Sequence record: LR756500.1
Strand: one strand, 5' to 3'
Length of the DNA stretch: 64,000 nt
Position 1 is the stretch's first letter; each line of letters opens with the position of its first letter. This document shows, piece by piece, positions 90-60,659 of this stretch. The position numbers were made by a program, and so were the translations under genes. Below the pieces are notes generated by a model. That model searched no databases. It saw nothing but the letters and a program-made list of their open reading frames with translations, and was not told where the DNA came from.

Positions 90-111
90 ATTAAATCTAT
101 TTAAAAATTTG

Positions 112-185
112 AGCCTCCAGTAGGATTCGAACCCACGGCCCTCTCGGTACAAACGAGATGCTCCGACCAACTGAGCTATAGAGGC
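112..185 (-). tRNA. tRNA-Thr(UGU)
   Basis: Acceptor GCCTCTA/TGGAGGC, anticodon arm TCTCG-TTTGTAC-CGAGA, T loop TTCGAAT. Confidence 0.92.
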
Positions 186-187
186 AT

Positions 188-225
188 TGGAGCGGGCTCG
201 GCGATTCAACCGAGGATCATCCCGC
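188..225 (-). ncRNA. tRNA-Gly-like minihelix (acceptor + T arm + CCA only)
   Basis: GCGGG-ATGATC-CTCGG-TTGAATCG-CCGAG-CCCGC-T-CCA; no D or anticodon arm. Confidence 0.55.
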
Positions 226-237
226 ATATTTTATTAG

Positions 238-309
238 AGCGAGATATCAGAATTAAACTGACGACCTGAACATTGGCAATGTTCCGCTCTATCACTGAGC
301 TAATCTCGC
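238..309 (-). tRNA. tRNA-Gly(GCC)
   Basis: Anticodon arm GAACA-TTGCCAA-TGTTC; U73; atypical T loop TTTAATT. Confidence 0.9.
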
Positions 310-447
310 ATTGTGTAGTTTTTGTAATATCCCCTGAACTACTAACAGTGCTAACCTATGATTTAGAGAACAGTTGCGCATTATTAAGAGGCAGTTCATA
401 TCTTCGATCCATTATAGTGCACCATAAGAGGGCTAATTTCTAAATTG

Positions 448-519
448 TTGTCTCTCACTGAGTCGAACAGTGATTTTTAGATCCAAATTCTAATATAATA
501 ACCATTATATCAAGAGACA
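448..519 (-). tRNA. tRNA-Gln(UUG)
   Basis: Acceptor TGTCTCT/AGAGACA, anticodon arm TTAGA-ATTTGGA-TCTAA, T arm CACTG-TTCGACT-CAGTG. Confidence 0.85.
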
Positions 520-673
520 ATTTAAAATGCGTAATAAAATAAAACAACGTTTCAACATGTTTCAATTTTATTTTATTACGACTATATAACAATAAGCAGC
601 TGACTACTAATTTCAGCATGTCTCCGTTTAAATTATCACTAACCCTAGGTGTAGAGAACTTATTATTACATTG

Positions 674-753
674 TGGAATCGGAGGGATTCGAACCCCCAA
701 GTCTTTCGAGCCTGATCTACAGTCAGGTAGGCCACCAATTGCCCAACAATTCC
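674..753 (-). tRNA. tRNA-Tyr(GUA)
   Basis: Anticodon arm CCTGA-CTGTAGA-TCAGG, extended variable region, T loop TTCGAAT. Confidence 0.9.
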
Positions 754-2023
754 AATTTATACTAATTCACTTAAAATTTGCCATTTAAATTTATCTTCTT
801 CTAAATCAATTCTTTGCATTACTAATGCTCTCAATATTCCGTAACTATTAACTGAAATATTTTCTTTAAATTTATCCATTGCATCATTAATAGATAAAAA
901 ACTTATCTTAGGTTCTTTTCCTTCATTACGTTCTATCTTTGTTAAATTTTCAATTATTTTACATACATTATATTCATTTAATTCATAAGAAACTGATACA
1001 TAATTTGATATTAAATATAATTTTTTCATTTAGATAACTCTTTAAAATAATTATAAACTTTTTTAAATATATTAATTTTTTCTTTGATATCTTCTTTAAT
1101 ATTAACTTGGCTATAGCCTATTCCAATTTGATTATTAGCAGTTTGAATTGTTTCAGTAATTATAACTTCTTCATTTTCATTTTCATCTAAAGAGTTAATT
1201 TTTAATCTACCTTCCTCGTAATATGAATAATAATTTGATTTAATTTTTTCTATAATAAAATTTGAAGGTATTTTACTTTCATTTTCATAAAATATTTTAT
1301 TGCCTGTTTCAATATGTTCTAATATCATAGCCTATTTATTTTGATTATTAATTTTTAATTTTTCTAATAAATCTTCTGTATCTTTAAGAGTTTTAGCAAA
1401 ATGTTTTTCTTTGTTTAAAACTCCTTGCCTATTAGCTTCATGCTTATCTAAATTTAAATTATTCAATAAGTCAGATGCTATTGATTTAGCATTTAAAAGA
1501 TCATTTGCTTTATAAGTCTTTGAAGGAATATAGGTATCACTTTTATGAGATTCTCTTAAATCTATTAGATGACCACAATTATAACTAAAAGATATTTCTT
1601 TATTAATGGTTCCTTCTACATAACCATACCTTTTTGTCCATTTTATTCTAGGCTTTCTCATCTTTAACTATTTTAATTAATTCTCTTAAACTTTCTAATT
1701 CAGCCTCTTCATAAGAAGATAAATTTTTCCAAGGAGTACCTTTTATTGTCCAACTAGTAATTTCACTTTCAGTTCCTCTATTACCGACAACTTTTCTAAT
1801 AGGAATATGTAAATTATATTTTTCTCTAAACCATCTAAAAGCTTGTTGATATAATGGTGCTTTAATGTAAACTCCATTATAAAATGCTAATTTATAATCT
1901 TTTATATAAATAGATTTATCATCTAAAAAAAACTGCAAAACATTCTTCATCAAATCCTAATTCTTTAAGAGTTAACGTTTCTTCATAAGGTACAAATTCT
2001 TTATTCATAATTTTTAAGATTTG

Positions 2024-2106
2024 TCGAGTTACAAGGATTCGAACCTAAAACTAGATTAATTACTTCTAGTACCACCCTTAATCGTTTTTGGATAAAGGTT
2101 AACTCG
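2024..2106 (-). ncRNA. Atypical or degenerate tRNA-like element
   Basis: 7-bp acceptor CGAGTTA/TAACTCG, T arm with TTCGAAT, CTAGA/TCTAG stem with 9-nt loop, oversized D-like loop. Confidence 0.5.
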
Positions 2107-2110
2107 TTTG

Positions 2111-2183
2111 TCGGAGTAGCTGGCCACGACCCAACGATCTCCACATCCCAAATGTGGCGCGATACCAACTTCGCTATACTCCG
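2111..2183 (-). tRNA. tRNA-Pro(UGG)
   Basis: CGGAGTA acceptor, anticodon arm CCACA-TTTGGGA-TGTGG; atypical T loop GTCGTGG. Confidence 0.9.
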
Positions 2184-2203
2184 ATATTTTTTTATTTAAA
2201 TTG

Positions 2204-2286
2204 TACCGAAAGTGGGAGTCGAACCCACACGCCTTATAGGCAAATCCTCTTAAAAGATTCATGTATAACCATTTCATCACTTCGGC
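2204..2286 (-). tRNA. tRNA-Leu(UAA)
   Basis: Anticodon arm AATCT-TTTAAGA-GGATT, long variable arm, A73. Confidence 0.9.
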
Positions 2287-2402
2287 ATCTTCAAGAAGAA
2301 CCCTATTAACATTTAAATTATCTAATTAATATTCGTCTTCCATCTAATAATTTTTTATTTCCAATACGTCAAAGACCTTTGAATCATTTATAGATTCAGC
2401 TG

Positions 2403-2551
2403 TGAGAGAGGATGGATTTGAACCACCAAAGACTTTCGTCCGCTGATTTACTGTCAGTTGAGTTTACCAATACTCAGTTTTTCTGTAATAGCTTTAAGTT
2501 CTATTTTCATAGATATTGTAAAAGTTATAAATTGAATTTATTAACTCTCTC
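2403..2551 (-). tRNA. tRNA-Tyr(GUA)-like gene interrupted by ~65-nt element (about 2478-2542) between acceptor and D stem
   Basis: Acceptor halves GAGAGAG / CTCTCTC are 149 nt apart; loop CAGTAAA (A33), variable arm GAC-GAAA-GTC. Confidence 0.75.
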
Positions 2552-2677: not shown

Positions 2678-3507
2678 TTATTTTAATGAATTTAAATTTA
2701 TATATGTTTCTAATTTATTTTTATAATAAGAACCATATTTTAATTCCCATTCATTAATTTTTTCTTTTAATTCTTCAATATTAATACTGCATTTAAATCC
2801 TTTTGATATATTATCATTATGTCTTAATAATTTACAATTTGCTGGATGAGCTAATAACAAAGGATTAATTTTTTGTTTATATCCTTCTGATACTGATAGC
2901 ATATGATCTCTACTTATGCCATTCATATTATTTCCCCTATTTTTAGCTTTATACCATCCGTATTTTTTATTAAAGTAAAATCAAATTCTTCATTATAACT
3001 ATTTAAAGAAAATTTAAATAGTGCATTATTATAATATTTTTTATAATTATCTAAATGTTTTCTTTTATATGCTCTTACACATTCATCAGAACAGTATTTT
3101 CTCATTAAAAAGTGCTCTTTTTCACAATAAGGACATTTTTTAATTCTAGGAGTTTTTAAAAATTTATCGTTCCATTTTTTATAAGAACCTTTTGATGCCA
3201 AACCGCTAACAGCTCTAGCACAAAATATACAACAATAATATTTTTCTTTAAATTCTCTTTTATTATTTGATTTAACTTCAAATTCTGTATTACATCTTAA
3301 ATAATTATTACACTTAACAATTTTTGTAATAATATTTTTATCTAATTCTTTTTTTCTTTTCTTTAATGATTTAGAAATTTTTTCTGATTGGTTTTTATAA
3401 TCTTTATTTTTATTAATCATTATATTTCTACATGCATAAGAACAATATTTATTAGTTAATTTATATTTTTCTTTACCACATACAGGACAATTTTTTTCGA
3501 GTTCCAT
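2678..3507 (-). pseudogene. Zn-finger/HNH-type homing endonuclease-like gene split by a 1-nt frameshift in an A-run near 2965
   Basis: ORFs 2923..3507 and 2678..2926 join into ...LIKKYGWYKAKNRGNNMNGISRDH... if one A is added; CxxC motifs. Could be a sequencing error. Confidence 0.55.
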
Positions 3508-3558
3508 AAATATTTTATTTTATATATTAGTGGAGCTATCAGAATTTGAACTTATTAT

Positions 3559-3639
3559 TGGTGGAGGAAATGGGGTTCGAATCCCATGAAACCTCTTGAT
3601 TGCAAATCAAGTACTCTAGCCAGACTGAGCTATACCCCC
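3559..3639 (-). tRNA. tRNA-Ala(UGC)
   Basis: Anticodon arm CTTGA-TTTGCAA-TCAAG, G3:U70, encoded CCA. Confidence 0.9.
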
Positions 3640-3685
3640 CCTAATAAAAATTTAATTCACAGTATTCCAAAGAACATTTTTAAAA

Positions 3686-3717
3686 CAAAAAAAATCCGAT
3701 TTGATTAGAACCGGATT
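3686..3717 (-). terminator. Intrinsic terminator of attenuator 1
   Basis: AAATCCG...CGGATTT stem followed by a T-run on the minus strand. Confidence 0.75.
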
Positions 3718-3750
3718 TAATATTTTAGTTTATATTTATACAAACATATC

Positions 3751-3819
3751 TCATCCGGTAATAGGTGGTGTTCCTAAAGTTTGTGCTTGACCTAATGGAT
3801 ATGTAGATAATGTTTTCAT
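3751..3819 (-). CDS. Leader peptide 1, MKTLSTYPLGQAQTLGTPPITG (22 aa)
   Basis: Manually translated; lies between promoter 3857-3885 and terminator; codons match the downstream tRNA cluster. Confidence 0.75.
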   Translation of the reverse strand: MKTLSTYPLGQAQTLGTPPITG

Positions 3820-3856
3820 TTTTTTATATATAAAACCTTTTTTGTGTAATTTGATT

Positions 3857-3885
3857 ATTATATGCATTTTTTCTAAAATGTTTCG
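3857..3885 (-). promoter_or_regulatory. CGAAAC-N17-TATAAT promoter (also at 25512-25540, 33125-33153, 38561-38589, 46540-46568, 62277-62305; N18 at 46604-46633, 47689-47718, 57014-57043)
   Basis: Same two hexamers with 17-18 nt spacing found by eye in at least nine intergenic regions. Confidence 0.7.
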
Positions 3886-4498
3886 AATAATTATTATTAT
3901 ATGTAAATATAATTAAAAAGAAATTAAAATAAAAATTTTTATAAAAATTAGTTAATTATATTCGATAATTGTTCTTGTTGTTGGTTTAACTTCATGCCAT
4001 ATTTGTTTTGCATTTACCATATCTTGTTTAATCCATGGAGAATCTCCTAATACGGCTTTAAAATATTTACCGCTAGATATTTCTTTAATAACATATTCAT
4101 GTTGAGTTGAATTTTTTGATTGATCGCTATCTATTATTTTTTCGCTTACTATTGTATAAAGTTTAATTTCATTTTTTGTATCATAAATACCTTCCTCATA
4201 CATTATAGATCGTATTTGTTCTTCCGTAAATGTTCTAGTTTCCATATTTAATTAATTTATGTTATACTTAATAGATTATGTAATTCCATTTGTAATTCTC
4301 GTCTACCCATTTGTTTTAAATAATAACCCATTTTTTCATATATTTCAATATCTGATAGATTTTGACCGTCTATAGCAAATCTTTGATTATTAATACCATC
4401 AAATACTACATAATCTTTATCTAATAAATCTTTAAATGAAGTTTTAGCATTAAAATTTAGACCAAGACTTACTCCTAATTTTATTATTTCGTTTGTTT

Positions 4499-5826: not shown

Positions 5827-6915
5827 TTATTCATATTTTAAAGATTTAATAAGTTTAGGATTTAATAAAATATATTGTAATAATTTTATTAAATCATCAA
5901 CATCATTTTTATGAACAGTTTCAACTGTAGTGTGCATATATCTCATCGCTAATTTTAATAAAGCAGTCGGTATTCCATGTGGATAAGCATATGAATCTGC
6001 ATTTGTTCCAGATCCTCTACCACTCGCAGTTAATTGATAAGGTATTTTATTTTCCTTTGCTGTATCAATTATTAATTTTAATAAATTCTTTTGAATTGAT
6101 GGAGCATTCATAATAACTAAACCTTTGCCCGCTGATACTGTACCTTGTTTACTTTTATTATATGCTGGGCTTTCAGTATCATGAGTTACATCTATGACTA
6201 TAGCTATATCAGGTTTAATTTTTTCAACAACCATTTGAGCGCCATGTAATCCTACTTCTTCCTGTACAGCATTAACTATAATTAATTCAAAAGGTAATTG
6301 AATTTTATTTTCATATAATTTTTTAATTAATTGTGAATTAACAAATCCTCCTATTTTATCATCTAGAGATCTACCACAATAATAATCTCCTAAATCCATA
6401 TAGCCATCAGACATTGTAATAGGAGTTCCAATTGTTATTCCTAATTTTTCAACATCTTCTTTTTTAGAAACTCCTATGTCTATAAAAATATTTTCTATTT
6501 TTAATTCGAATTTATCTTCTTGAACATGAATAGCAGGGTGACCAAAAACACCTTTAACTTTTCCATTGTCTCCCCATATATCAACTCTGGCTGATGGTGT
6601 AATTGTGATGTCAGAACCACCTAAACGTCCAACTTTTATAAATCCTTCATTTGTAATATCAAATACAAAAAAACCTATTTCATCACAATGAGCATCTAAT
6701 AAAACAGTTTTTATTTCTGATGTTTCTTTTAATGTTTTTAATGCTAAATTAGAAATATAATAAGCATATGCATTACCATAATTATCTATTTCAACTTTGT
6801 CAGCATATTTTTTAACATAATCTATCCATACTTTTTGACCTCCTAATAATAATTCGTATCCACTAGGAGATGGTGTATTAATATATTTTTTAAGAAATTC
6901 TTTTCTGTTTTTCAT
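5827..6915 (-). CDS. M42 family metallo-aminopeptidase (FrvX/YsdC-like)
   Basis: SPSGYE, AHCDEIG, LDDK, VQEEVGL, DVT, HT metal-binding motifs. Confidence 0.85.
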   Translation of the reverse strand: MKNRKEFLKKYINTPSPSGYELLLGGQKVWIDYVKKYADKVEIDNYGNAYAYYISNLALKTLKETSEIKTVLLDAHCDEIGFFVFDITNEGFIKVGRLGGSDITITPSARVDIWGDNGKVKGVFGHPAIHVQEDKFELKIENIFIDIGVSKKEDVEKLGITIGTPITMSDGYMDLGDYYCGRSLDDKIGGFVNSQLIKKLYENKIQLPFELIIVNAVQEEVGLHGAQMVVEKIKPDIAIVIDVTHDTESPAYNKSKQGTVSAGKGLVIMNAPSIQKNLLKLIIDTAKENKIPYQLTASGRGSGTNADSYAYPHGIPTALLKLAMRYMHTTVETVHKNDVDDLIKLLQYILLNPKLIKSLKYE

Positions 6916-16714: not shown

Positions 16715-16771
16715 ATAATAAAGTATTAATTATGTAAATATAATAATAAAGTTTGATAAATAAAAAAAATG

Positions 16772-21035: not shown

Positions 21036-21476
21036 TTATTTGTAAAGTTTTAATTTTCCTGTTATATTATTAATTTCTTCTTCATCAGCTGGTCCTATTG
21101 CTACACATGTTTTAGTAGGAACTCCATTAAATATAGTATCACCAGCATCTGTAATAAGTACTGTAGGAAGTTTAGCATCTTTAGCTTTATAATAAATTAA
21201 TTCTAATTCTTCTTCAGAATTACATTCTAAAACAATTTTAGTAAATTTTTCTTCCAACCATTTATCTAATGAAGAATTAATTGCATATGGAATAGTTATA
21301 ATTTTTTCATTATAAATAAAAGTTGAACCATCCTTAACTTCTTTTCTAATTCTAATATCTTTTTCACTTAAAGATAATACAGCACCTAAAGAAGCATGAG
21401 ATACTTGAGCAGCTAATTTACCAGCCGGCATATTTAAATCTTTTCTTGCTACTATTACTTGTTTTGCTTTTGACAT
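21036..21476 (-). CDS. pth2: Peptidyl-tRNA hydrolase type 2
   Basis: KQVIVARKDL, GKLAAQVSHA, TKIVL, TDAGDT, TCVAIGP. Confidence 0.9.
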   Translation of the reverse strand: MSKAKQVIVARKDLNMPAGKLAAQVSHASLGAVLSLSEKDIRIRKEVKDGSTFIYNEKIITIPYAINSSLDKWLEEKFTKIVLECNSEEELELIYYKAKDAKLPTVLITDAGDTIFNGVPTKTCVAIGPADEEEINNITGKLKLYK

Positions 21477-21659: not shown

Positions 21660-22090
21660 ATAATACCTAGAAATTGAAACCGTTCAAAAATTGAATACTC
21701 AAAAGTATTCTACCGTTTATTTGAATAAAAATTCGGCAAAAAAGGTCATGATTCCGAGATTAAAGTGCAGAAATACATCCGAATTAGCACTTAACTTGAT
21801 GAGGTACAAGTTAAACCCATGTGATATAGCTCATTTGCAAAGCTGTACTGACGTCTTTTCATATGGAAAACCCGTATGAAATACATAGTAACTGACATCT
21901 TAAATATTTTATAATCTATATAATTCATAATATCAAAGAACGGTTTCAACTTCATCATCGGTATCCCACTAAGTAGGGAAACTTTTTAACTTTTCGACAG
22001 TTAACATCGTTTACATGTTTCGCTAGTAACCTACGACACACTGATGCGTTCAGTAGAGACGCCATTAATTAACCTTAATGGGAAGGTTAT
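21660..22090 (-). ncRNA. Candidate large structured ncRNA of unknown family
   Basis: No credible ORF, raised GC, many hairpins, 16-bp long-range helix 21670-21685 / 21938-21953. Confidence 0.5.
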
Positions 22091-23292: not shown

Positions 23293-24186
23293 TTATGCTA
23301 TAAATACCTTTTCATTATTTTTAAATACTAATTTTCTTCCTTTAATCCAACCTTTATTTATCCATTCATAAACTTCTTCTTTTTTTACTCTTATAGATTT
23401 CTTCTCTTCTAAATTATGTATCCAACACTTTCCATACTGACTATTTCTTGAACCTAATTGAGATATTTTATTTGCTTTACTTATTTTTTCTCGATGCTCT
23501 TTAGCTAATTTACGTCCTATTTGAATTCCAACTAATTCACCTGATAAATATCTTGGATCATCTACATTTACCCAAAATTTATTTCCGTCTTTATCTTTTA
23601 CACTTGTTTTATGTTTCATTATTCCAACTAATTCACTACTTAAAACTCTAGAATCATTTAAACGACATCTAATAATANNNNNNNNNNNNNNNNNNNNNAA
23701 AGAAAAATATTTACTTTGATATTGATATTCACCTGATTTTAATTTTATATTATTTACATCACATTTAAAAGAATTTCCTTCTTTATCTATAACATTGACT
23801 TTTCCTATACTTATAGGGAAATATTCATTATTATATCTTGAATCACTTTTTAACATTAATGTTTTATTATTTTTTTTATCTTTAACTAATACCAATCCTT
23901 TAGTATTCCAACCATAACCACCTAACATAATATTATAAACATCTTTTCTTTTAACAAACTCTTCATTTACTAACTCAGCCTCTTTAGCAAACATCTCTTC
24001 AAATGTATCAAAATTATAAAGAACTATACGTTCAAAATTGTCTATTCCATACTTCTTAAATGCCTTATGCAAATAAGTACCTGATCCCATATAACCATCT
24101 TCCAACTTATCCGTCTGATGACAGCCTATATAAATTTTATTGTTAATTTTATTAATAATTTCATAAACTATATTATACTTACTCAT
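23293..24186 (-). CDS. GIY-YIG (Seg-like) homing endonuclease; contains a 21-N gap at 23678-23698
   Basis: NIVYEIINKINNKIYIGCH, YMGSG, YNIMLGG, repeated VKDK motifs. Confidence 0.8.
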   Translation of the reverse strand: MSKYNIVYEIINKINNKIYIGCHQTDKLEDGYMGSGTYLHKAFKKYGIDNFERIVLYNFDTFEEMFAKEAELVNEEFVKRKDVYNIMLGGYGWNTKGLVLVKDKKNNKTLMLKSDSRYNNEYFPISIGKVNVIDKEGNSFKCDVNNIKLKSGEYQYQSKYFSXXXXXXXXIIRCRLNDSRVLSSELVGIMKHKTSVKDKDGNKFWVNVDDPRYLSGELVGIQIGRKLAKEHREKISKANKISQLGSRNSQYGKCWIHNLEEKKSIRVKKEEVYEWINKGWIKGRKLVFKNNEKVFIA

Positions 24187-24243
24187 ACCAATGATATATT
24201 TTATTTTATATATCATTAATAGTTCGAGTAAATTATTCGAGGA

Positions 24244-24381
24244 TGGCCGAGAGGGGATTCGAACCCCTGATGTTATCGTGACAAGATAAGACTTTATCCA
24301 TTTATTCTGTAATAACTTTGAGTCCTATTGAGTAGGTAATTTATAAGTTATCTGTGAACTTATTACTAAGCTACTCGGCCA
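24244..24381 (-). tRNA. tRNA-Asp(GUC)-like gene interrupted by ~66-nt element (about 24301-24366) in the D loop
   Basis: GGCCGAG-TA-GCTT-AG|insert|TGGATA-AAGT-C-TTATC-TTGTCAC-GATAA; A73. Confidence 0.8.
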
Positions 24382-24450: not shown

Positions 24451-25149
24451 TTAAATATTATATTCCTTTTTAAATTCTATTTTTTGTTTTCTATTTTGAA
24501 AATCTTTTAATATATTTAAATTTATTAAATCTTCATCTATTAAAATTTTTAATTTACAGGGAAAATTATTCCATTTTGCTAAATCTTTTAATGTAACGTA
24601 TCCTTTAATTTCAATATAAATTTTTTCATCTAATAAAAAGAAATCAGGTCTATATCTTCGAGTTTTTCCTTCATATTCATATTCAAATGTAATATAAGGC
24701 CTTTCCCATTTAATATTATTTTCATCTAAATATTTAGCATAAAGATATTCCCATTTTACTTGTAATTTTATTCCATTATATTCATAATAATTTTTTTTAG
24801 AAAAAGATGTATGCCATTCTCCATTTTTTATTCTTTCATTTATTTTATCAGATATTTTTTGTTTATGTTCTTTTGTTAATTCTGTATTTTTAGAATGATG
24901 TTTAAATAATCCTTCTTTTAAATGTTTCGTTAATGTTTCACCACATCTTTTAACTCTTTCATCAGTATCTTTAGTTAAACCTTTATTCCAAATTATTCTA
25001 CCTTTTTTATATCCGGCATTAGGATCATGATTTCTACCTTCTCCATGCATTTTCCAAATATGTGATCCTATTCCATAAATTGAATATTCTTTATTACATA
25101 TTAAACATTTACATTTTCCGTTATCTAATTTTACATATTGTTTATCCAT
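24451..25149 (-). CDS. Homing endonuclease (zinc finger, WNKGLT repeat, PD-(D/E)xK C-terminus)
   Basis: CxxC-H, WNKGLTK, YRPDF...YIEIKG. Confidence 0.65.
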   Translation of the reverse strand: MDKQYVKLDNGKCKCLICNKEYSIYGIGSHIWKMHGEGRNHDPNAGYKKGRIIWNKGLTKDTDERVKRCGETLTKHLKEGLFKHHSKNTELTKEHKQKISDKINERIKNGEWHTSFSKKNYYEYNGIKLQVKWEYLYAKYLDENNIKWERPYITFEYEYEGKTRRYRPDFFLLDEKIYIEIKGYVTLKDLAKWNNFPCKLKILIDEDLINLNILKDFQNRKQKIEFKKEYNI

Positions 25150-25285: not shown

Positions 25286-25369
25286 ATATTTATTTTCAAT
25301 GAACTAATATGTAAATATAATAAAAAAGTAATTAATAAAAAAATCCAGCATGTCAAAGAACCATTTAAA

Positions 25370-25398
25370 CGAAAAAATCCAACTTGTTAGGTTGGATT
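25370..25398 (-). terminator. Intrinsic terminator of attenuator 2
   Basis: AATCCAAC-CTAACAA-GTTGGATT then T-run; boxA-like GTTCTTTGAC at 25352-25361. Confidence 0.75.
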
Positions 25399-25424
25399 CT
25401 TTAATATTATTTATATTGTTAACA

Positions 25425-25496
25425 TTAAGCCCAACTCGATTGGATGATATTATTATCATCTCTTCTATTGTCTATTATGTTAACTAAATTAATCAT
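25425..25496 (-). CDS. Leader peptide 2, MINLVNIIDNRRDDNNIIQSSWA (23 aa)
   Basis: Manually translated; between promoter 25512-25540 and terminator. Confidence 0.75.
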   Translation of the reverse strand: MINLVNIIDNRRDDNNIIQSSWA

Positions 25497-27416
25497 GTTC
25501 AAAAATTTATTATTATATGCAAATATAATAAAATGTTTCGCTTTGGTAATAAATTTATTTTTAGATATCATTTAAATTAGATTTACCTTCGCAGTTATCA
25601 GATTTAGCAACCATATTATCTCTTTTATCAATTATAGATTTAATTGATTCTTCTAATTTAAGACATTCAAATCCTTTTGATCCGCAACCTACATATTTAC
25701 AACAATTTTTACCTTGTCCTATTTTACAAACCTCTTTTATATGATTATTCATTTTTAATAATTTTAAGTTGTTGTTCAATATAATTAGCTATTTCAATAC
25801 ATTCTTCATCTTGTATCCAATAAAAATCTATTCCATTAATAGTTACTGAAAAATCAGAATCAGTTGGATCAAGAACTACATTTGTTAAACTTACAACTGG
25901 ATTGTGTCTTTCTTTATCTTGCTTTTCCCATCGTTCTTCAAATTTACTAATAACAGAAGGAACTTTGCTTATTTTATTTAATTTTTTTAATGCCTCTGAT
26001 TGATTTTCTTTTGGTTTTATAGGCCAATGATTATCATAATTAAAAAATTCGGTTGATTTTCTAGTAAGTCCATGAGTTATTTTTAATTCTAAACCACTCC
26101 AATCTGTAATTTTATTATAATTTTTTAAAATAAAAATTTTAGCACTATTAGCAACTATAACTAATGCACTAGTATATTTACTATATGTTTCATAAAAATC
26201 TTTATCAGTCCAAAATTCTGTAGATTTATAAGCATTCTCAAAATCTTCTTCTGATGTAAAACACGGAACAAATGAAGGTGAAAAATTACTCATTAATTTT
26301 ATTCGCTAAATTAGTCATTAAATTATTCATTTCATTTGTTGGTTCTTTACTACCATTTTTAAGTGCTTCTAATTCTTCATCAAATATAATAAATGGATCT
26401 TTTGTTATAGATGGAAATCCATTTGCTATTCCTTCTGCATCGAGTTCATTTATATTTAATAAAAAATCTTCAATAATTAATGGACATCCTTCATACTGTA
26501 AAATAGGATAAAAAGAAGCTTCTATATAAACAGTATCTCTACGTAAAACTTTTAAATCTTTAAAAGATTCATGATTATTTATTTGTTTAGTTATTTCTTC
26601 TTGTTGATCAGACCATGATGTAGGACCATCTTTTAATAAAAGTTTAATAACTTTATATTCTTCATCCATCCATACATATCTAAGTCTTCCTAACAATGGA
26701 TATTTTTTTTCAGGATCATGAGGTTGAGCCCAATTTATACAGGCTAATAAATATTTTCCTAGAGGATGTGGTTTAACAACCATATTAAACATTGACATAA
26801 TAATTTATTTTAAATTTATTAAACTGTATGTAGTATTATCAGAATTTAAAAAATATCCACTATTAAAAAGTTTAAGAATATTTTCTTTTTTAATATCTAT
26901 TATAATATTATGATCATTATATTTATACATTTTATAATAAATAGAATCTATATCATATATTAAAAATAGCTGTCTATCATTTTTAATTAAACATAAAAAT
27001 GTTCCAACTGGAATATTATACTGTGTATAAGTTACTAGTTCATTATTTTCATTAAACGATTCACCTAAAAATCTTATATTAGATTTATGTAATTCTTTAG
27101 CAGTTGGACCGCAAGATATAAATAAAACACCAACTAAAAGTATTAAAATATATTTATTCATAATTAAAATATCTAATGTTTCGTTTATAATGAATTTTTT
27201 TAACCATTTTTGATAATAAAAGATATTGTATAATATTTTTATAATTTTTATAATGAGCATTACCATCAAACATATAATGACTATTATTTAAGCATTTTTT
27301 ATTTTTGTCTATAATTCGTTTTACATCTCTCTGTATTATACCTTCAGGATTTTTTTTAATCTCCTCATACACAATCATAGCTGCTTCAAAATTTTCTTTT
27401 CTTAATTTTGGTATCA

Positions 27417-29293: not shown

Positions 29294-30095
29294 ATATTAA
29301 AAAAGAGTTATTACTAACTCTTTAATATTATGATAACGCTGGATTTTCATCAAATAATAATTTGTATAATTCAACACCTTCTTCATGTGCTAAAGTAGCT
29401 TCTTTTACTGCAAGACTTGCAGTAAGAATTTCGTTAAAATTTGTACCATTTTTAGCATTTTCAATAGTTTTCTTGAAATTTGCATTTGTAGCTCTTACTA
29501 CATTTTTTCTTTTAATAATTACGCTTTCGGCATCAATTCTTAATTCATCAAATGCGCCTTTTGCTGCCTCTTTTGCAATTGTGTCTTTGTCTTTACTCCA
29601 TAAAGAAATTAAGTCAAATTTTTCTACTGTTTTTTCTACTGTTTTTTCCATAATTTTCAATTTTATTGTTAAACTTAAATTTATAATTTATATCTTAATA
29701 TCATTAATCTTCTATATATTGATTTTTGATTTGAAATTATTGTCCATTCTCTAAAAAACTTAGGATCAACTTCAATTTCATCACCAACATTTTTAATATC
29801 CTTTACAGAAAATCCACATAATGATGTTAAAGATCCATCTTCTTTTAAACGTATAGGTACTTTAATATCAGTTAATTTAATTTTAATTAAATTATTTTTA
29901 ATATTATCAACATCTATAACCTTTGCTATTATAATCTTTCCTAAATCTGTAAAATTATATTCTATAGAATTTTTATAAGGAATTATCATATCTCCTACTC
30001 CAAATTTTTCCATTTTTATTTCTATTATGTAAATATAATAATAAAGTTTTAATTATATTTTAAAATTATTATTCATCAGTTCCCATATTTTAATT

Positions 30096-32141: not shown

Positions 32142-32511
32142 ATTTATTTTTTATGACTATCTGGAATTATATTATATGCTTTCATTTCAAAAGGATATAA
32201 CCCTATAAACTCCATTTCATTAGGAATACATTTTTGAATTTCAATTGCTTCATCATCATTATGGCATGCTGCTAAACATACTAATCTTATTGCTTCTGTT
32301 ATATCATCTTCTGATTTAACAATATCACTTAAATGTTTACCTAATAAAGTTTTTACAATTTCTTTTGCTTTAATTAATTCCATTTTCAAAATTTCAAATA
32401 ACATGTAAATTTAATAAATTAGTTTTAATTTAAAAAATTTAGTTTAAAAATATACCGGTTTAATGTAAGGAAGGGGTCTAAATAATAAAGATAACCGGTA
32501 TATTTTTAGAG

Positions 32512-32921
32512 TGGAGCTGCAGGGGTTTGAACCCTGGTCCGTCGAAAGAACTATTAAAATTTCTACATGCTTAGTAACTTTTATCTTTTAATTATTTTAA
32601 TGGTAAGTTACATCCTAATAAAATACTTAGTTGTTATTTTTCGATTAAATATTTCAACTTATATTTAACTTATTTAAGTTCAGTTATGCCATAAAATTAA
32701 AGTACTTAAAACACTTTAAAGTATGACAGCAAATTTAAATACCTAGTATTCAATTTTGCAAGAGTGACTATTAAACAGTACTACCCGTTAAGCTGCCATT
32801 CTCATTTCAGCATTGTTGCCATTTATTATTTGTTATTCATTTCTGTTTAAAGAGAAAAATAAACAAATTCTCTGCATGCTTAATTAACAATTTACTAACA
32901 CGTCAATTCCATGTCAGCCCC
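32512..32921 (-). ncRNA. ssrA: tmRNA; tag ORF 32788-32820 reads (A)GNNAEMRMAA*
   Basis: GGGGCTG/CAGCTCC acceptor with G3:U70, GGAATTGAC 5' motif, T arm, tag ending AA-stop. Confidence 0.92.
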
Positions 32922-32980
32922 CATATTTTCAAAGAACATTATTTAAACTAATATGTAAATATAATAAATTAGTTTAAAAT

Positions 32981-33013
32981 AAAAAAACCCAATTCAAAAA
33001 ATGAATTGGGTTT
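32981..33013 (-). terminator. Intrinsic terminator of attenuator 4
   Basis: AAACCCAATTCA-TTTTT-TGAATTGGGTTT then T-run. Confidence 0.8.
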
Positions 33014-33041
33014 AATTTTAAATTATAGTCTAAGACCCAAT

Positions 33042-33104
33042 TCAGCCGAGTGAAGATTTTCCACTAAACTTTGCTATCATATGCATATCGAATCTTTGAA
33101 GCAT
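33042..33104 (-). CDS. Leader peptide 4, MLQRFDMHMIAKFSGKSSLG (20 aa)
   Basis: Manually translated; the stop codon begins TGAATTGGGT, a perfect 10-nt complement of the terminator 5' arm. Confidence 0.7.
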   Translation of the reverse strand: MLQRFDMHMIAKFSGKSSLG

Positions 33105-36100
33105 TTTTATTTTTTAAATTTATTATTATATACAAAAAATTAAAAATGTTTCGATATTTTATTCAAATACCTCATACTCTGAATTTTTTGTTTTAAATTT
33201 GCAATAGATCATATGATTATCTTTATCATATTTTTCTTCTATTATTTCGGTTACTTCCGTTGTTAACCAATAATCTTTAGTACTATAAGATCTTGCTGTT
33301 AGAGATCCTACTAAAAAAGAACATCCAACTACAGGTTTACCATTTCCAATAACTTCCTTTAATGTGCCATCTTCATTCCATTTAATAGCTTCGGCTCTGC
33401 TGCCAGAGTCACCTTGTCCGTCTTTTATTCTTCTTAATGTAGGCATTATTATTTATTTTAAAGTATCTGCAATAGCTATACTATCAGTTACTGTTACTGC
33501 AGGTATAGTAATTAATGTTGAATCAGTTGCTAATGAATCAATTGATGTTGTTACTGAACCTTCTGGTATACCACAAGATGATACCATTAAAATCATTGCT
33601 AAAATTAAAAATGTAAATTTCATTGTTTTTATTTTTTTATTATTTCTTATTATAGTATATTTATAAGATTATAATCATTAAAGGTTATACTATTAACCAT
33701 TATCAATTATCTCTTTAAATTGAGAATTACTGATTACTTAACTTAATATATATTAGTTTTAATTTTTAAAATTGTACTTGATCAACTATATTTTGATAAT
33801 TTTCATCTTTTTGCATATTCCATAATTTATTTTGTTGTTCTTCGGTAAAAAATCAAAATGGATAACAATGTACAGATAAAAATGCTATATCAATATTTTT
33901 AACATTTAATTGATCTGCAATATACTTAACATACATTAAATTTAAAATCCAACCACCAGGTCTATCAGATGTTGTAATTAATAAAAACATTGCAGCTGGA
34001 GTAAATTCTAAATTTAATTTAAAAACCTTTATTCTAGTAGAAATTATTTTATACGGAAATAAATCTTTTAAAGCGTTTAATAAAGATTCAGATGTTTCAC
34101 TCTCTTTATTAAGAGTAGAATTAATTATTATTTTCATTTGATCATCTGTTCCCTTTAATCTAGGTTGATCATTTTTTAAAAATGTATCAAAAATTTCTTT
34201 AATTCTTTTCATATTTTTATATTAAACCTTTTTCTGTAATATCATAGGGTATTACGGTATCTATTTCACTTTGTGTTTCTAAAAATTGTATTACAGTTAG
34301 TAATTCTTGACCTCTATCAATATTATCCCAAACACCACAAGATTCAATATTAGACGTAGCTTCTATAGCACTAAAATAATTAAATTCAAATATACCATTT
34401 CCACTTCCTTTAAAATCATTTGCCTTTTTTAAGATTTTTGGCGGTTTAAGTTGACATTTATTTGGATCAAAAATATCTATTCCAATGGTATCAAGTAATG
34501 TAATAAGATTTTTTATTAATTTTGGAAAATGATTTTTAATATATTTCCAACTATTTTCAGTATTATTAATATAACGCTTAATATCTGGATCATATAATAT
34601 CATGCTAGAATATAACATATTATCATATACCCTTACATTTTTAAATGGTTCATTATTAACAAGTATAACCATATCAAAATCATCTATAATATGTTTTAAA
34701 GCATTTACAGATAAGCTATATTGTTTATACATTAGTGCACTAAGAGAATATAAAAGATTTTGCACTAAATTAAATTCTTTAGTCCATTCGTTGTGTTTAG
34801 CTAAAAGCTCAGATTCTTTTAACATTTCTAATGGTTCTAAAAGAACCCCTAGTTTATTATCATTTAATACGTCAACTAATGAATTTAATGATTTAGAAAT
34901 CATATTCATTTGGGTTCTAGCATTATCATATATCGTAATTTCAGGATTATGAAATTTTGACATAGATTTAGGTTTTAATGTTTGTATATTTTCTACATGC
35001 ATATTAAATAGATTAAGATATATCCGATGACACGTGTTAAATTAAAAAATTGGTAATATGGTAATATTAAATAATAAAAAAGATTTAAACGGTATCACGG
35101 TTTAAATCTTGTATGCATTATTTTTTCCTTTCCCATAACCCTAAATTTTTATTATCCTCTGTTGTTTCTACAATTGGAAAAGACTTAGATTTAATTGTTG
35201 TTGTTCTTCCAATTTTAATAAAATATTTTTTAGTAGGATCAGGCTTATAAACTTTATCATATGGTTCATACTGTTCAATTTCTTCATAATTCATTCCAGT
35301 ATTATCATGATAATAAAACCATCTTCCACTTTGAAATAAAAATAAAGAAACTATAAAAATAGATATAAAATATGAAGGTAAAACTAATTTACTAATATCA
35401 AATTTTCTTTTATTTTTCATAACTCATAAAATTAAAAAGTATCACTATTCCATCCATTTTCTGTATACCATCTATTAGATACATTTAAATCAGTAGATCT
35501 AAGAGCTGACCAAATAGCTCCTAATCCTGCTCCTAAAATTAAAGAAATACCTAATGAAGGTAAAAAAGGCATGCCAATAATACCTAATATTGGTAATATT
35601 ACTAAATGTGCTATAATAATGCTATTAACAATCCAATGATTTAAAGAAGTTGCTCTTGTAAAACCTTTTATTCTTCTTGTAATTGTAAAATCATTACCCC
35701 ATGAAAATACATGTATAAATTTATCAGATTCTTGTAATGAATAAGGATTGCCATCTACTTTATAAAAAAGCATAGGATCTTTAGGAGCCTTTTGTAATTT
35801 AAAATTTTCTCTTGGAGCAAGAATAAAAAAATTTGCAGCATCACCACTCCATGTATCTCCATTTAAACCTACTCTTTTTCCGTATTTTTTAGCAAAACCT
35901 TTAATACGAGCCGGCACTTCAGGAGAAACGTTTCCTTCGTAATGATTAGTTTGTAAAAAGCGAAGATCATATTTAATAGCTAAATTTTTAATTTCTTTAA
36001 CTGTAAATACTTCTTCATTGTATTCAGTTTCTATTTTTTTACGTTCTAAATCTATTCCTCTAGCAGCTTCAACTTTTTTTACATTTTTATCTAGTCCTAA

Positions 36101-38291: not shown

Positions 38292-38543
38292 TTACGAATA
38301 TAATAAACTTGAAGATGAATCTGAATTTAAACTCGAATTTTCACTCAGATCAAGCGGTGTCATATGTTGATGTCCTTTAAGAGTCCATAAAACTAAACCT
38401 TTAGTAATTTTGATATAACCTTCACTCATAAGTTGATTAACTCTATTCTGACCATATATAGCATGTAAATTTGCTATAGTATTGCTCATATTGAATTCAC
38501 CATTCTTAATTGTATTCATTATTGAAATGTCTATCGATTTCAT
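38292..38543 (-). CDS. Small protein with Ser-rich C-terminus directly upstream of two tRNA-Ser genes
   Basis: Ends LSENSSLNSDSSSSLLYS; promoter at 38561-38589. Confidence 0.6.
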   Translation of the reverse strand: MKSIDISIMNTIKNGEFNMSNTIANLHAIYGQNRVNQLMSEGYIKITKGLVLWTLKGHQHMTPLDLSENSSLNSDSSSSLLYS

Positions 38544-39205
38544 TTGAACTTTTATTTTTTATTATATACAAAAAATTAATTTTGTTTCGAATTATTTATT
38601 TGCATAATGATTTTTATGCCATTTATATAAATTTTGATTTAAATAATGTTGAGCTAATTTATCATTTGGACAATTAATCTTATACCATTCACTTAATTCT
38701 TCTATAGTTGCAATTATAGGATAATTAATAATAACACGCATATTTCGCACTTCAACTCTATGCTTATGATAAAACCATTCCCAATTTTCTTTAGAATTAT
38801 TTAATTCGTATTGTGTTTGTGTTATATTATAAAATGAAGTGTTTAATAATAAAACACTTCCTAATTTAACTGTAGATTTTTCACTATTTTTATAAGCATT
38901 TAACCAATGCTTGCAAAAAGCAATAGCTAAATCTTTTTTATATTTCTTTTTTCTTTTTCTACTAAGTTTAAATTTTTGATATGGCTTTTGATATTGCGAA
39001 TTCACATCTTTGTTTTGATCTATACCAATTTTCACTTTTAATTAAATTAATTTTCTGTTCATTATCTAATGCAGACCAAGATATAGAATTAGGTTCTAAA
39101 ATATATGTAAAAGTATTTGTTCTTATATAATAAATTAAAACTTTTTGTCTTTTAGATGCTGCATCTAATTGCATTATTATATTTGTTATGTCTAAATCTT
39201 TCATA

Positions 39206-45885: not shown

Positions 45886-45973
45886 TTATAGTTAAATATT
45901 ATTTTTTGAATTTTATATATCTAAATAATATAAAAAAACCTATATAAATAAATTATATAGGTTTTTTTGGGGC

Positions 45974-46114
45974 TGGAGGGAGTAGGAATTGAACCTACAA
46001 TATCAAAACCCTAAATTTTGCGTGTTTACCGTTTTTCTGTAATGACTTTGAGTTCACCTTTAAAAGATGGTATTGTAAAAGACATAATTGAATTTTTATT
46101 TTCACCATCCCTCC
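45974..46114 (-). tRNA. tRNA(UAG), Leu-like with short variable loop, interrupted by ~69-nt element (about 46032-46100) in the D loop
   Basis: GGAGGGA-TG-GTG-AA|insert|CGGTAAA-CAC-G-CAAAA-TTTAGGG-TTTTG. Confidence 0.8.
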
Positions 46115-46369: not shown

Positions 46370-46506
46370 TGGCGGGGGAATTCGGGATCGAACCGAAACT
46401 GAATGTTTTCAACACATTTGCTCTACCAATTAAGCTTTTATACTGTAATAACTTAGAGTTTCTTTTCAGACTAATTTTAAAGTTATAGATGTAAATCTAT
46501 TCCCCC
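46370..46506 (-). tRNA. tRNA(UGA) in a class I body, interrupted by ~62-nt element (about 46436-46497) after position 9
   Basis: GGGGGAA-TA|insert|GCTT-AATTGGTA-GAGC-A-AATGT-GTTGAAA-ACATT; G73 plus CCA. Confidence 0.78.
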
Positions 46507-46672
46507 ATATTTTATTTTTAAAATGTTAATGAACGTTTAATTATATAAAATAAATTAAAAAAGTTTCGAAATTAATAAAAATTATTTAATTTATTTTATA
46601 ATTATTATATGTAAATATAAATATAAAGTTTCGCATTTAAAATTTTTTCCTGTAAAAATTAAAAAATATTTT

Positions 46673-48591: not shown

Positions 48592-48652
48592 AACTAAATT
48601 TTTTAAATTTCTAATAAGTAAATATAATAAAAATGTTTTAATTAAAAATTTG

Positions 48653-48720
48653 TAGGACTAGTGGGAGCTGAACCCACGTTATCGGTTTTAGAGACCGATT
48701 TCTAACCACTAGATAGTCCC
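48653..48720 (-). tRNA. Amber suppressor tRNA(CUA) with tRNA-Pyl-like geometry
   Basis: GGGACTA / TCTA-GTGGT-TAGA / ATCGGT-CTCTAAA-ACCGAT / AAC / GTGGG-TTCAGCT-CCCAC / TAGTCCT-A; 68 nt. Confidence 0.8.
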
Positions 48721-48725
48721 CTTTG

Positions 48726-48909
48726 TGATTGTAGAAGGACTCGAACCAACAACCCCTCACTTTCAAATTACTGACAAAAATACTATTAAGCGTCCCTAAA
48801 TTCATTTTGTTTTTATTCTATTTATTATAAATATATCATCCACTTATGCGCTATAAGCTTATATACACCTACAATAAAAATAAGACTCTAACCATTGAGC
48901 TATACAACC
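48726..48909 (-). tRNA. tRNA gene with ~112-nt insertion in the anticodon loop; anticodon unresolved
   Basis: Acceptor GGTTGTA/TACAATC, intact D and T arms, stem CTTAT/GTGAG separated by about 48764-48875. Confidence 0.7.
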
Positions 48910-49435: not shown

Positions 49436-49483
49436 TTAAAACAAATACGTAGGACCTCTAATTGTAATTTTAATCTATTTCAT
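49436..49483 (-). CDS. Short amber-containing peptide MK*IKITIRGPTYLF (not in ORF track)
   Basis: ATG AAA TAG ATT ... AGA GGT CCT ... TAA; start context 15/16 identical to the upstream gene. Confidence 0.55.
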
Positions 49484-49495
49484 AACTTTAATTTT

Positions 49496-49837
49496 TTAAA
49501 TTTCACGAAGCATAAGTGGTAAACTTGAACATATTCTTTTAGACTCAATTCCTGGCTCAACAGCAATTGCAGTAAGTTGATTGCCTATATCAGGTTCTCT
49601 AAATTCTGTATAAGCCAACTTAGAATGCATAAATTTAGAAATATACTTTTCTAATTCGCATTCATTTTTAACAGATAATAAACAAAGATAATTTGAATTT
49701 TTATTCCAACATTTAGAAATTTCTGGATATTGATGTTGAAAATCTATAGCAGCATGTGTAGCCTGAACTGCCTGATAACCAGGCTTTAAATCTTCCCTAG
49801 TAATAATAATTAGTTTATGATTATTAATCTACTTCAT
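49496..49837 (-). CDS. Pth2-fold protein with in-frame TAG at codon 3 (113 codons; not in ORF track)
   Basis: MK*INNHKLIIITREDLKPGYQAVQATHAA...LSVKNECEL...EFREPDIGNQLTAIAVEP. Confidence 0.75.
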
Positions 49838-56822: not shown

Positions 56823-56845
56823 ATATTAAATATTTCAAAGAACAA

Positions 56846-56880
56846 AATAAAAAGGTTCAAATCTTGCGATTTGAACCTTT
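56846..56880 (-). terminator. Intrinsic terminator of attenuator 3
   Basis: AAAGGTTCAAATC-GCAA-GATTTGAACCTTT then T-rich; boxA-like GTTCTTTGAA at 56834-56843. Confidence 0.85.
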
Positions 56881-56910
56881 AAATATAGAATTATATAGTT
56901 AATGCACAAA

Positions 56911-56985
56911 TCACATAATATTAATGTTCACCTCTTCTAGAAGATGTTCCCAAATATGAATGATATGTACAGAAATTGCTTTCAT
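56911..56985 (-). CDS. Leader peptide 3, MKAISVHIIHIWEHLLEEVNINIM (24 aa)
   Basis: Manually translated; between promoter 57014-57043 and terminator. Confidence 0.78.
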   Translation of the reverse strand: MKAISVHIIHIWEHLLEEVNINIM

Positions 56986-57070
56986 TTGTTTATATATTAA
57001 AATTTTATTTGTAATTATATGCAAATATATATAAAAAGTTTCGCATTTACAAATTTATTTTAAATTATTT

Positions 57071-59750: not shown

Positions 59751-60659
59751 TTAAATTATATTTAATGAATTAATTATGTAAATATAATAAAAAAGAGTTT
59801 AATTAAAAACAAAAAGAGCATAATTAAAAATTACACTCCTTATTAATTTAAAATATTTTGTTTATTTATTTTCAGTTGTTCCTTTTGCAGATTCTTTAAT
59901 TTCCTCAAATTGCTTTTGTACTTCAGCATAAGGTATTTGTTGTAAATCAAATGCTATAATATGTATAACCTTTAATTCATTATCTATAGTATTTGTAAAT
60001 GATGAATCAATTATAGAAGTAGATAAATATGTTTGAATTTGATTATCCATATTTGCATACATTTTATAATGTTCTTTATTTGAAGATAAATTTTCATCCA
60101 TTTTTAATCCTAATGGAATTATTTTACTAAATAATAAAATACCAGTACATATCAAAAATGTTGCTAATAAATTATCTGAAGAATCTCCCCATCCTTTTTT
60201 AGAAATAATTAAACCTAAAATTAAACAAACTATCATAAATATAGTTTGTAAAATTATAAAATAATATAAATTAGCTATAAAAAAATCTATAGTTTTATCG
60301 TGTGAATCTGCTCTTTTTCTTATAATTTTTAGTTGATTAAATATTCTATTTAATGTATATTTATCTTCATTTTTTTTAGGATTAACAATATATCTAGCAT
60401 TAGATACTTTATCATAAATGACTACAGTTTTTTCAGAATTAATAGAAGTATCCTTTAGGGTTAAAATATTTTTATCACCAGATAATTTATCTGATTTAGT
60501 TTCAGCCATTCTAATAGTAATAAAATGAAATATAAATAACATTAATATTAATATAATGGCTGAAACTAAAACAAATCTTTTTTTAATAAAATTTATAACC
60601 TTTACATAATTCATAGAATTAACTATATTAAATTATATATTGATCATAAACCCTTTTAA

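Follow-up and report, generated by a model that had tools for sequence, protein, structure and literature searches.

A predicted leader-peptide attenuator upstream of tRNA genes in a huge groundwater phage

The 64,000-nucleotide stretch of DNA analyzed here (the window) is part of a 429-kb phage genome from a groundwater metagenome; the 462-kb record LR756500.1 is identical to it over the stretches compared. The GC content is about 24%, and nearly all genes lie on the minus strand. All of the genome's tRNA genes but one, together with its tmRNA gene, lie within the window, where they are interspersed with homing endonucleases and translation-related genes. On the minus strand, positions 3886-3687 hold a promoter-like site, a 22-codon open reading frame (ORF), and a hairpin with a T-run, followed by tRNA-Ala and eight more tRNAs (Table 1). 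The last of these, Gly(UCC), lies about 500 nt beyond the window start. The second Tyr(GUA) gene is a weak prediction: ARAGORN detects it only at a lowered threshold, and Rfam returns only a sub-threshold tRNA-clan hit.

Table 1. Features of the Ala unit and of its three sibling units, in window coordinates.
Feature	Position	Strand	Description
Motif A	3901..3911	-	TATATTTACAT; general promoter-like motif of this phage, here just upstream of the unit
Motif B	3857..3886	-	sigma-70-like promoter; -35 TCGAAA 3886-3881 (inside CGAAACATTTT 3885-3875), 18-nt spacer, -10 TATAAT 3862-3857
Leader ORF	3751..3819	-	ATG 3819 to TGA 3753-3751; 22 codons plus stop
Region 1	3790..3804	-	leader codons 6-10 (Thr-Tyr-Pro-Leu-Gly); pairs with region 2 when no ribosome is present (anti-antiterminator)
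Region 2	3744..3759	-	last two codons, the stop and 7 nt after it; contains ACCGGAT (3759-3753)
Intrinsic terminator	3687..3718	-	hairpin 3718-3692 with 10-bp stem and 7-nt loop; 5' arm 3718-3709 is region 3 and contains ATCCGGT (3716-3710); 3' arm 3701-3692 is region 4; T8 run to 3687
GTTCTTTGG motif	3667..3675	-	variant of the conserved GTTCTTTGA motif
tRNA-Ala(UGC)	3559..3639	-	first regulated gene in the model, 55 nt after the hairpin
Rest of the putative transcription unit	111..2483	-	tRNA genes interspersed with ORFs
tRNA-Tyr(GUA), weak	2402..2483	-	
tRNA-Leu(UAA)	2203..2286	-	
tRNA-Pro(UGG)	2110..2183	-	
tRNA-Tyr(GUA)	673..753	-	
tRNA-Gln(UUG)	447..519	-	
tRNA-Gly(GCC)	237..309	-	
tRNA-Thr(UGU)	111..185	-	
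Sibling unit 1 (His)	56854..57043	-	motif B; 24-codon leader 56985-56911 rich in His, Glu, Val, Trp and CTN-Leu (CTT and CTA); terminator 56877-56854; precedes tRNAs His, Glu, Val, Trp, then Leu(UAG)
Sibling unit 2 (tmRNA)	32988..33153	-	motif B; 20-codon leader 33104-33042; terminator 33010-32988; 10-bp antiterminator across the stop codon; precedes tmRNA, then Lys, Met, Phe
Sibling unit 3 (Asn)	25378..25540	-	motif B; 23-codon leader 25496-25425 rich in Asn, Ile, Asp, Arg; terminator 25396-25378; precedes tRNAs Asn, Ile(UAU), Asp, Arg(UCU), Met

The leader ORF is written largely in the codons of the tRNAs that follow it. It contains Thr x5 (ACA x3, ACT, ACC), Leu TTA x3, Pro x3 (CCA x2, CCT), Gly x3 (GGT, GGA x2), Gln CAA x2, Tyr TAT and Ala GCA; the remaining residues are Met, Lys, Ser and Ile. 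An earlier note, made from the sequence alone, had claimed that 18 of the 22 leader residues match the downstream Ala/Tyr/Leu/Pro/Gln/Gly/Thr tRNAs and that ACCGGAT at the leader end is complementary to the 5' arm of the terminator. Both claims, and the codon counts given with them, were confirmed, and the tRNAs that the note named are present downstream on the same strand, the second Tyr only as the weak prediction described above. With the amino acid usage of the phage itself, the seven cognate residues make up 0.33 of protein, so that 18 cognate residues among the 21 non-initiator positions correspond to a binomial p = 8e-7. ACCGGAT, spanning the last two codons and the first base of the stop, is the exact complement of ATCCGGT; the energy of the duplex between regions 2 and 3 is -11.2 kcal/mol, against -3.9 to -4.6 kcal/mol for shuffled sequences (p about 0.003-0.004). 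Replication in independent units, within the window and in relatives (see below), rules out a multiple-testing artefact.

The sigma-70-like site lies between the upstream gene, which ends at 3952, and the leader ORF, with no other gene in between. Copies of motif B (CGAAACATTTT, about 10 nt, then TGCATATAATAAT) with the full -10 partner lie only in the tRNA region of the 429-kb genome, at window positions 57043, 49885, 46568, 33153, 25540 and 3885, with a variant near 38590. Motif A is more general, with 17 copies genome-wide, mostly directly before ORFs. The leader start resembles that of real genes of this phage, which lack a Shine-Dalgarno sequence (GGAG before fewer than 1% of 382 ORFs), have A-rich upstream regions, and carry Lys as the commonest second codon; the leader fits all three, although its translation was not observed. 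That the tRNA genes form one transcription unit is inferred only from the absence of predicted terminators and promoters: the genes are spread over 3.6 kb with ORFs in between, no credible minus-strand terminator was found between the attenuator hairpin and tRNA-Thr (the next prediction, at 57-39, has a 5-bp stem and looks false), and no copy of motif A or motif B occurs between 3885 and the window start.

Folding the leader RNA in both of its states, which the earlier note had proposed as a check of its reading, reproduced the expected switch. The unconstrained minimum free energy (MFE) fold pairs region 1 with region 2 and forms the terminator (z = -2.55). When a 30-nt ribosome footprint was placed with its A-site at codons 4-13, region 2 instead paired with the 5' arm of the terminator in an extended hairpin, even when the 3' arm was available. 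With the A-site at codon 16, 19, 22 or the stop, the terminator formed again, together with the 1:2 pairing. The Rfam Thr_leader covariance model (RF00506) aligns end to end over 3813-3685 with the same two hairpins, but at 30.5 bits (E 4e-4) it falls below the family threshold of 55 bits, and the element is not assigned to that family.

Three further copies of motif B in the window are followed by a 20-24 codon ORF and a hairpin with a T-run. The residue match of the tmRNA unit is weak by itself (6/19, p = 0.09). In the tmRNA and Asn units the ORF end is significantly complementary to the 5' arm of the hairpin; in the His unit it is not (p = 0.06 and p = 0.20 in two analyses), although a pairing of regions 1 and 2 was also seen there. 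The 1:2 pairing was not assessed in relatives. For these three units, equilibrium folds of the full-length RNA with a stalled ribosome always retained the long terminator; the antiterminator appeared only in nascent-RNA folds, and for the Asn unit not as the MFE, so that the switch must be kinetic there. Equilibrium folding cannot see a kinetic switch, and we did not count this result as evidence against one. A motif A copy sits between terminator and RNA gene in the tmRNA and Asn units, and the GTTCTTTGA motif, to which no role was assigned, is found between terminator and first stable-RNA gene in several units. One further locus (38543-38292) has a Ser-rich ORF tail directly before tRNA-Ser without any hairpin.

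To ask whether the correspondence between leader and tRNA set extends beyond this genome, we searched for relatives. By DNA similarity, the phage collection returned only the same phage (LR756500.1, 100% identical), which gives no information on conservation, and a single-protein search of IMG/VR with the AAA ATPase found no relatives. A scan of IMG/VR for the promoter pattern returned unrelated phages with a GC content of 33-36% (loci L001-L009), of which L001 and L005 have a short ORF plus hairpin after a similar promoter but no clear tie to tRNAs. The huge phages LR756511 and LR745208 (GC 42% and 57%), found via peptidyl-tRNA hydrolase, show no leaders before their tRNAs; the more distant huge phages inspected (L010, L011, L001, L005) lack such leaders. 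The M42 peptidase 2 kb upstream of the Ala unit (5827-6915) proved more informative, with homologues of 60-74% identity on AT-rich huge-phage contigs; an alignment of these retrieved 42 IMG/VR loci. The closer M42 homologues P0003, P0004, P0011, P0012, P0016 and P0019 gave loci without tRNAs because synteny is not kept, P0005 had no DNA, and no true orthologue of the Ala unit was recovered.

Among the M42-derived loci, L013, L019 and L054 carry a short ORF (L013:13138-13245) located 2.3 kb downstream of the peptidase, with 19 of 20 consecutive residues from Ala, Val, Arg, Thr, Gly and Pro; a terminator and the GTTCTTTGA motif follow, and then tRNAs Pro, Thr, Gly, Arg, Val, Val and Ala. We then fixed a scan that required a tRNA group, a hairpin within 230 nt upstream, and an ORF of at least 10 codons ending from 8 nt inside to 90 nt before the hairpin. 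Many more units were found: PQDQDQP before Gln-Asp-Pro-Asp (L036); SSSSSRSS before Arg-Ser-Ser, AYYYEGE before Glu/Tyr/Gly/Ala, and IGGGAGA before Ala/Gly (each in L041 and L043); VHMSSSSSHVSV before Ser-Val-His (L023); a His/Lys/Phe/Trp-rich leader before Phe-His-Phe-Trp-Lys x4 (L043); and a leader with 19 kinds of residue before a 19-tRNA array (L055).

The correspondence was quantified using the longest ORF without trimming, which dilutes the signal, and a tRNA set comprising every tRNA up to the next unit or a 2.5-kb gap. In a discovery set of 14 non-redundant units, 201 of 436 residues are cognate against 114 expected, while the same DNA read in the other two frames gives 214 of 805, the background rate; Fisher's combined p is about 1e-19, and 0 of 100,000 permutations of tRNA sets among leaders reach the observed value. 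We then fetched further tRNA regions of four of these genomes as a held-out set and ran the unchanged pipeline. Eight new units gave 87 of 195 cognate residues against 46.6 expected (Fisher 4e-9; 4 of 40,320 permutations), with LCLCLLVLV before Cys-Leu-Val-Val-Leu (L068) and 17 of 20 residues before Leu-Leu-Ile-Glu-Asn-Ile-Met (L064) as examples. For Leu, Ser and Arg, 33 of 40 leader codons fall in the box read by the downstream anticodon against 21.9 expected (p = 1.5e-5), so the leaders track isoacceptors and not just amino acids; one leader carries Arg CGC and CGA before tRNA-Arg(ACG) in a genome where CGN is 7% of Arg codons.

The architecture is regular across the 25 units scored, all of which possess a hairpin plus T-run. 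The stop codon lies 20-42 nt before the hairpin (median 26), and the best complement to the 5' arm lies in the last codons or across the stop, being individually significant in 14 of 25 units (Fisher 6e-16). The hairpin ends 8-155 nt before the first tRNA; in 11 units this gap is only 8-23 nt, too short for a separate promoter, so those tRNAs can only be reached through the terminator.

Taken together, a model emerges of a ribosome-mediated transcription attenuator placed in front of a phage tRNA transcription unit. In this model, transcription would start at the motif B promoter (about 3850) and a ribosome would translate the leader. If the cognate tRNAs are plentiful and charged, the ribosome would reach the last codons and the stop and cover region 2, the terminator would form, and RNA polymerase would terminate before tRNA-Ala. 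If any of those tRNAs is limiting, the ribosome would stall within about codons 2-14, occupying region 1 and leaving region 2 free to pair with the 5' arm of the terminator, and transcription would read on into Ala, Tyr, Leu, Pro, Tyr, Gln, Gly, Thr and Gly. Because the products are the molecules being sensed, this would be direct end-product feedback on decoding capacity, resolved to the isoacceptor, and would let the phage make only the tRNAs that the infected cell lacks, for example in a host with different codon usage or after tRNA depletion. Sequence and computation establish the anatomy, the alternative pairings, and the leader-tRNA correspondence with its covariation across phages, whereas promoter firing, ORF translation, termination at the hairpin, and the direction of the response are our inferences. 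The sequence was found only in DNA runs of one groundwater study, whose contigs gave identical fragments and nothing about RNA, and no RNA, ribosome-profiling or termination data exist for this phage or its relatives; the dependence of read-through on leader translation and aminoacyl-tRNA supply was thus not measured, and, with the host unidentified, transcription-translation coupling and the identity of the polymerase are assumed. The attenuator interpretation offered in the earlier note is supported, in that every sequence-level prediction of such a device is fulfilled, with the parts in the right order and spacing, and we hold it with fairly high confidence. Its key claim, that the leader mirrors the downstream tRNAs, is reproduced in the three other units of the window and in more than 20 units of related phages whose tRNA sets differ.

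Two alternatives survive best, though we consider both unlikely. In the first, leader translation would control tRNA output without the antiterminator switch, through changes in Rho access, RNase processing or precursor stability, or with inverted logic in which stalling lowers output. Only sequence evidence is available, equilibrium folds of three window units do not show the switch, and the locus preceding tRNA-Ser lacks a hairpin; however, the presence of hairpin and T-run at a narrow distance from the stop in every scored unit, the overall significance of the complementarity, and the folding of the Ala unit exactly as the classical model requires all speak against it. In the second, the device would be the same but the signal would be amino acid supply, as in biosynthetic operons. 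A stalled ribosome senses only aminoacyl-tRNA, as in the trp and his attenuators, and cannot tell a missing tRNA from an uncharged one, so that starvation would also trigger read-through; yet tRNA genes cannot relieve amino acid starvation, the leaders follow anticodon boxes, and leaders with up to 19 different residues precede 19-tRNA arrays (L055).

Somewhat less likely still, the short ORF plus terminator could be a self-contained small gene or small RNA, with the tRNAs transcribed from their own promoter downstream of the hairpin, such as the GTTCTTTGA/GTTCTTTGG motif or motif A. The 55-nt gap with its conserved motif in the Ala unit and the motif A copies in the tmRNA and Asn units are compatible with this reading, and an extra promoter is not excluded for the Ala unit. 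It does not explain why leader composition, down to codon boxes, follows the downstream tRNA set in more than 20 units, nor the complementarity of the stop codon region to the terminator arm, and in the 11 units with the shortest gaps there is no room for a promoter; an added constitutive promoter would be compatible with attenuation rather than replace it. Chance, a spurious ORF beside the terminator of the upstream gene favored by the abundance of short ORFs and by choosing the tRNA set after seeing the peptide, and likewise a tRNA-fragment origin of the ORF, are rejected by the frame controls and permutations, chance being further contradicted by the p value of this unit, the replication, and the dedicated promoter between the upstream gene and the ORF.

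The device works like known leader-peptide attenuators, and the differences can be stated system by system. The threonine operon leader (thrL) and the other single-pathway leaders (trpL, hisL, pheL, leuL) share the promoter, the short ORF with runs of regulatory codons, the 1:2, 2:3 and 3:4 alternative hairpins, and a stop codon next to region 2 with an intrinsic terminator after it. Their regulated genes encode biosynthetic enzymes, however, whereas here they are tRNA genes, and tmRNA in a sibling unit; the present leader is phage-encoded and carries seven kinds of regulatory residue instead of one or two, and the element is not a member of the amino acid operon leaders. The multivalent ilvGMEDA and ilvBN attenuators of enterobacteria similarly report on several amino acids or tRNAs at once, a stall at any of them giving read-through, but cover three related amino acids (Ile, Leu, Val) of one pathway; here the sets are arbitrary mixtures that copy the downstream tRNA array. 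The pheST attenuator, a Phe-codon leader before phenylalanyl-tRNA synthetase, also controls part of the translation apparatus, but through a protein gene for one amino acid, while here the RNA product is itself the sensed molecule. T-box riboswitches couple isoacceptor-specific sensing of tRNA status to a terminator/antiterminator choice, but bind uncharged tRNA directly through a specifier codon and need no translation; here an ATG-to-stop ORF carries an in-frame signal, and no T-box match appeared in 3500-4000 at the gathering threshold or at E up to 10. T4-like and jumbo phages also cluster tRNA genes with homing endonucleases and translation-related genes; full-text literature searches found no description of leader-peptide control of tRNA genes in phages or cells.

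Why phages carry tRNA genes, and how they time or dose them, is an open question, for which codon-usage matching and escape from host tRNA depletion are the usual answers. An attenuator that reads the phage's own tRNAs would be the first regulatory logic shown for phage tRNA arrays, and we know of no other case in which leader-peptide attenuation controls tRNA or tmRNA genes, such that the regulated product is the sensed molecule. The question becomes directly testable, because each leader states which decoding shortages the phage expects, and the leaders offer natural, modular sensors of individual isoacceptors that could serve as reporters of tRNA availability in cells or cell-free systems. 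In a broader reading, which we judge only slightly more likely than not, a whole clade of AT-rich huge phages would run its translation-supply genes as a set of closed feedback loops. Each tRNA array, and the tmRNA gene, would sit behind a leader that spells out its own anticodon repertoire, up to 19 kinds, so that the phage would measure, codon by codon, what the infected cell cannot decode and transcribe only those tRNAs. The conserved mini-ORF with TAG as its third codon, upstream of the suppressor tRNA(CUA), would be the same idea applied to stop-codon recoding.

As three of the four window leaders end in TGA, we also considered whether TGA is a sense codon in this phage. This was rejected: frames of up to 1,792 codons are open under code 11, Trp from TGG alone is 1.1%, and the only tRNA-Trp has anticodon CCA.

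A suppressor tRNA(CUA) is present in the phage, and relatives have one too (L065, L067 and L069, sequences from related phages). Directly after a copy of motif B, the sigma-70-like promoter, a Pth2-like ORF starts ATG AAG TAG, and a mini-ORF starting ATG AAA TAG follows; the same mini-ORF (Met-Lys-TAG-Ile...Arg-Gly-Pro-Thr) precedes the tRNA(CUA) region in L067. TAG is probably read as sense, and the mini-ORF may be a sensor of suppressor activity. The tRNA region also carries a second Pth2-like (peptidyl-tRNA hydrolase) gene and tmRNA, while relatives (L017 and L072) carry SmpB, IF3, a HisRS-like gene and a sigma-70-family gene near the M42 peptidase. The clade invests heavily in translation supply.

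A conserved motif, GTTCTTTGA, lies 6–33 nt upstream of tRNA or tmRNA 5′ ends, often right after the attenuator's terminator, and is rare elsewhere in the genome. It reads GTTCTTTGG in the Ala unit, and GTTCATTGA or GTTCTTTAA in some relatives. The motif could be a promoter element, a processing site or a pause site, among which our analysis did not decide. It also precedes a GC-richer, apparently structured non-coding stretch upstream of tRNA-Arg(UCU); a similarly placed stretch occurs in a relative, L065. No Rfam family matches at the gathering threshold, and the stretch may be an undescribed stable RNA.

After a motif-B-like promoter, an 83-codon ORF ends in a Ser-rich tail (9 of the last 17 residues, mixing AGT and TCN codons), with only a few bases and no hairpin before tRNA-Ser(GCU) and tRNA-Ser(UGA). 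This arrangement may be a different, terminator-less version of the same idea. Zn-finger and homing-endonuclease-like ORFs sit between tRNA genes of the putative transcription units; they would be co-transcribed with the tRNAs if the attenuator is read through. Several tRNA genes carry insertions or introns of 60–110 nt; ARAGORN calls an intron in two of them, and Rfam sees only a partial tRNA at 46379-46439.

Genome-wide, motif A (TATATTTACAT, preceded by a T-rich tract) occurs 17 times, usually just before ORF starts and sometimes immediately before the ATG, which suggests a general phage promoter and leaderless or very short-leader mRNAs. Across the whole genome there is no Shine-Dalgarno signal (GGAG upstream of fewer than 1% of 382 long ORFs), positions −14 to −10 are A-rich, and stop codon use is TAA 318, TGA 45 and TAG 19. 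These features point to a host with SD-independent initiation.

Coordinates of additional features in the window and in related phages (L-numbered sequences)
Feature	Position	Strand
Suppressor tRNA(CUA)	48652-48720	-
Motif-B promoter before the TAG-containing Pth2-like ORF	49885	
Start of that Pth2-like ORF (ATG AAG TAG)	49826-49837	-
Start of mini-ORF (ATG AAA TAG)	49472-49483	-
Mini-ORF in L067	L067:1524-1553	
Pth2-like genes and tmRNA	21036-21476, 49500-49837, 32511-32921	-
GTTCTTTGA motif and variants	3667-3675 (Ala unit), 21933-21941, 25353-25361, 32929-32937, 56835-56843	-
GTTCTTTGA motif or variant in L013	L013:13325-13333	
Apparently structured non-coding stretch	21700-22000	-
Similarly placed stretch in L065	L065:2110-2600	
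Motif-B-like promoter before the Ser-tailed ORF	about 38590	
Ser-tailed ORF	38292-38543	-
Zn-finger and homing-endonuclease-like ORFs	2923-3507, 2678-2926, 23293-24216, 24451-25149	-
tRNA genes with insertions or introns	48725-48909, about 46375-46510, about 45965-46110, 24241-24381	-
Motif A, example copies	3901-3911, 16732-16742, 30027-30037, 59776-59786	-
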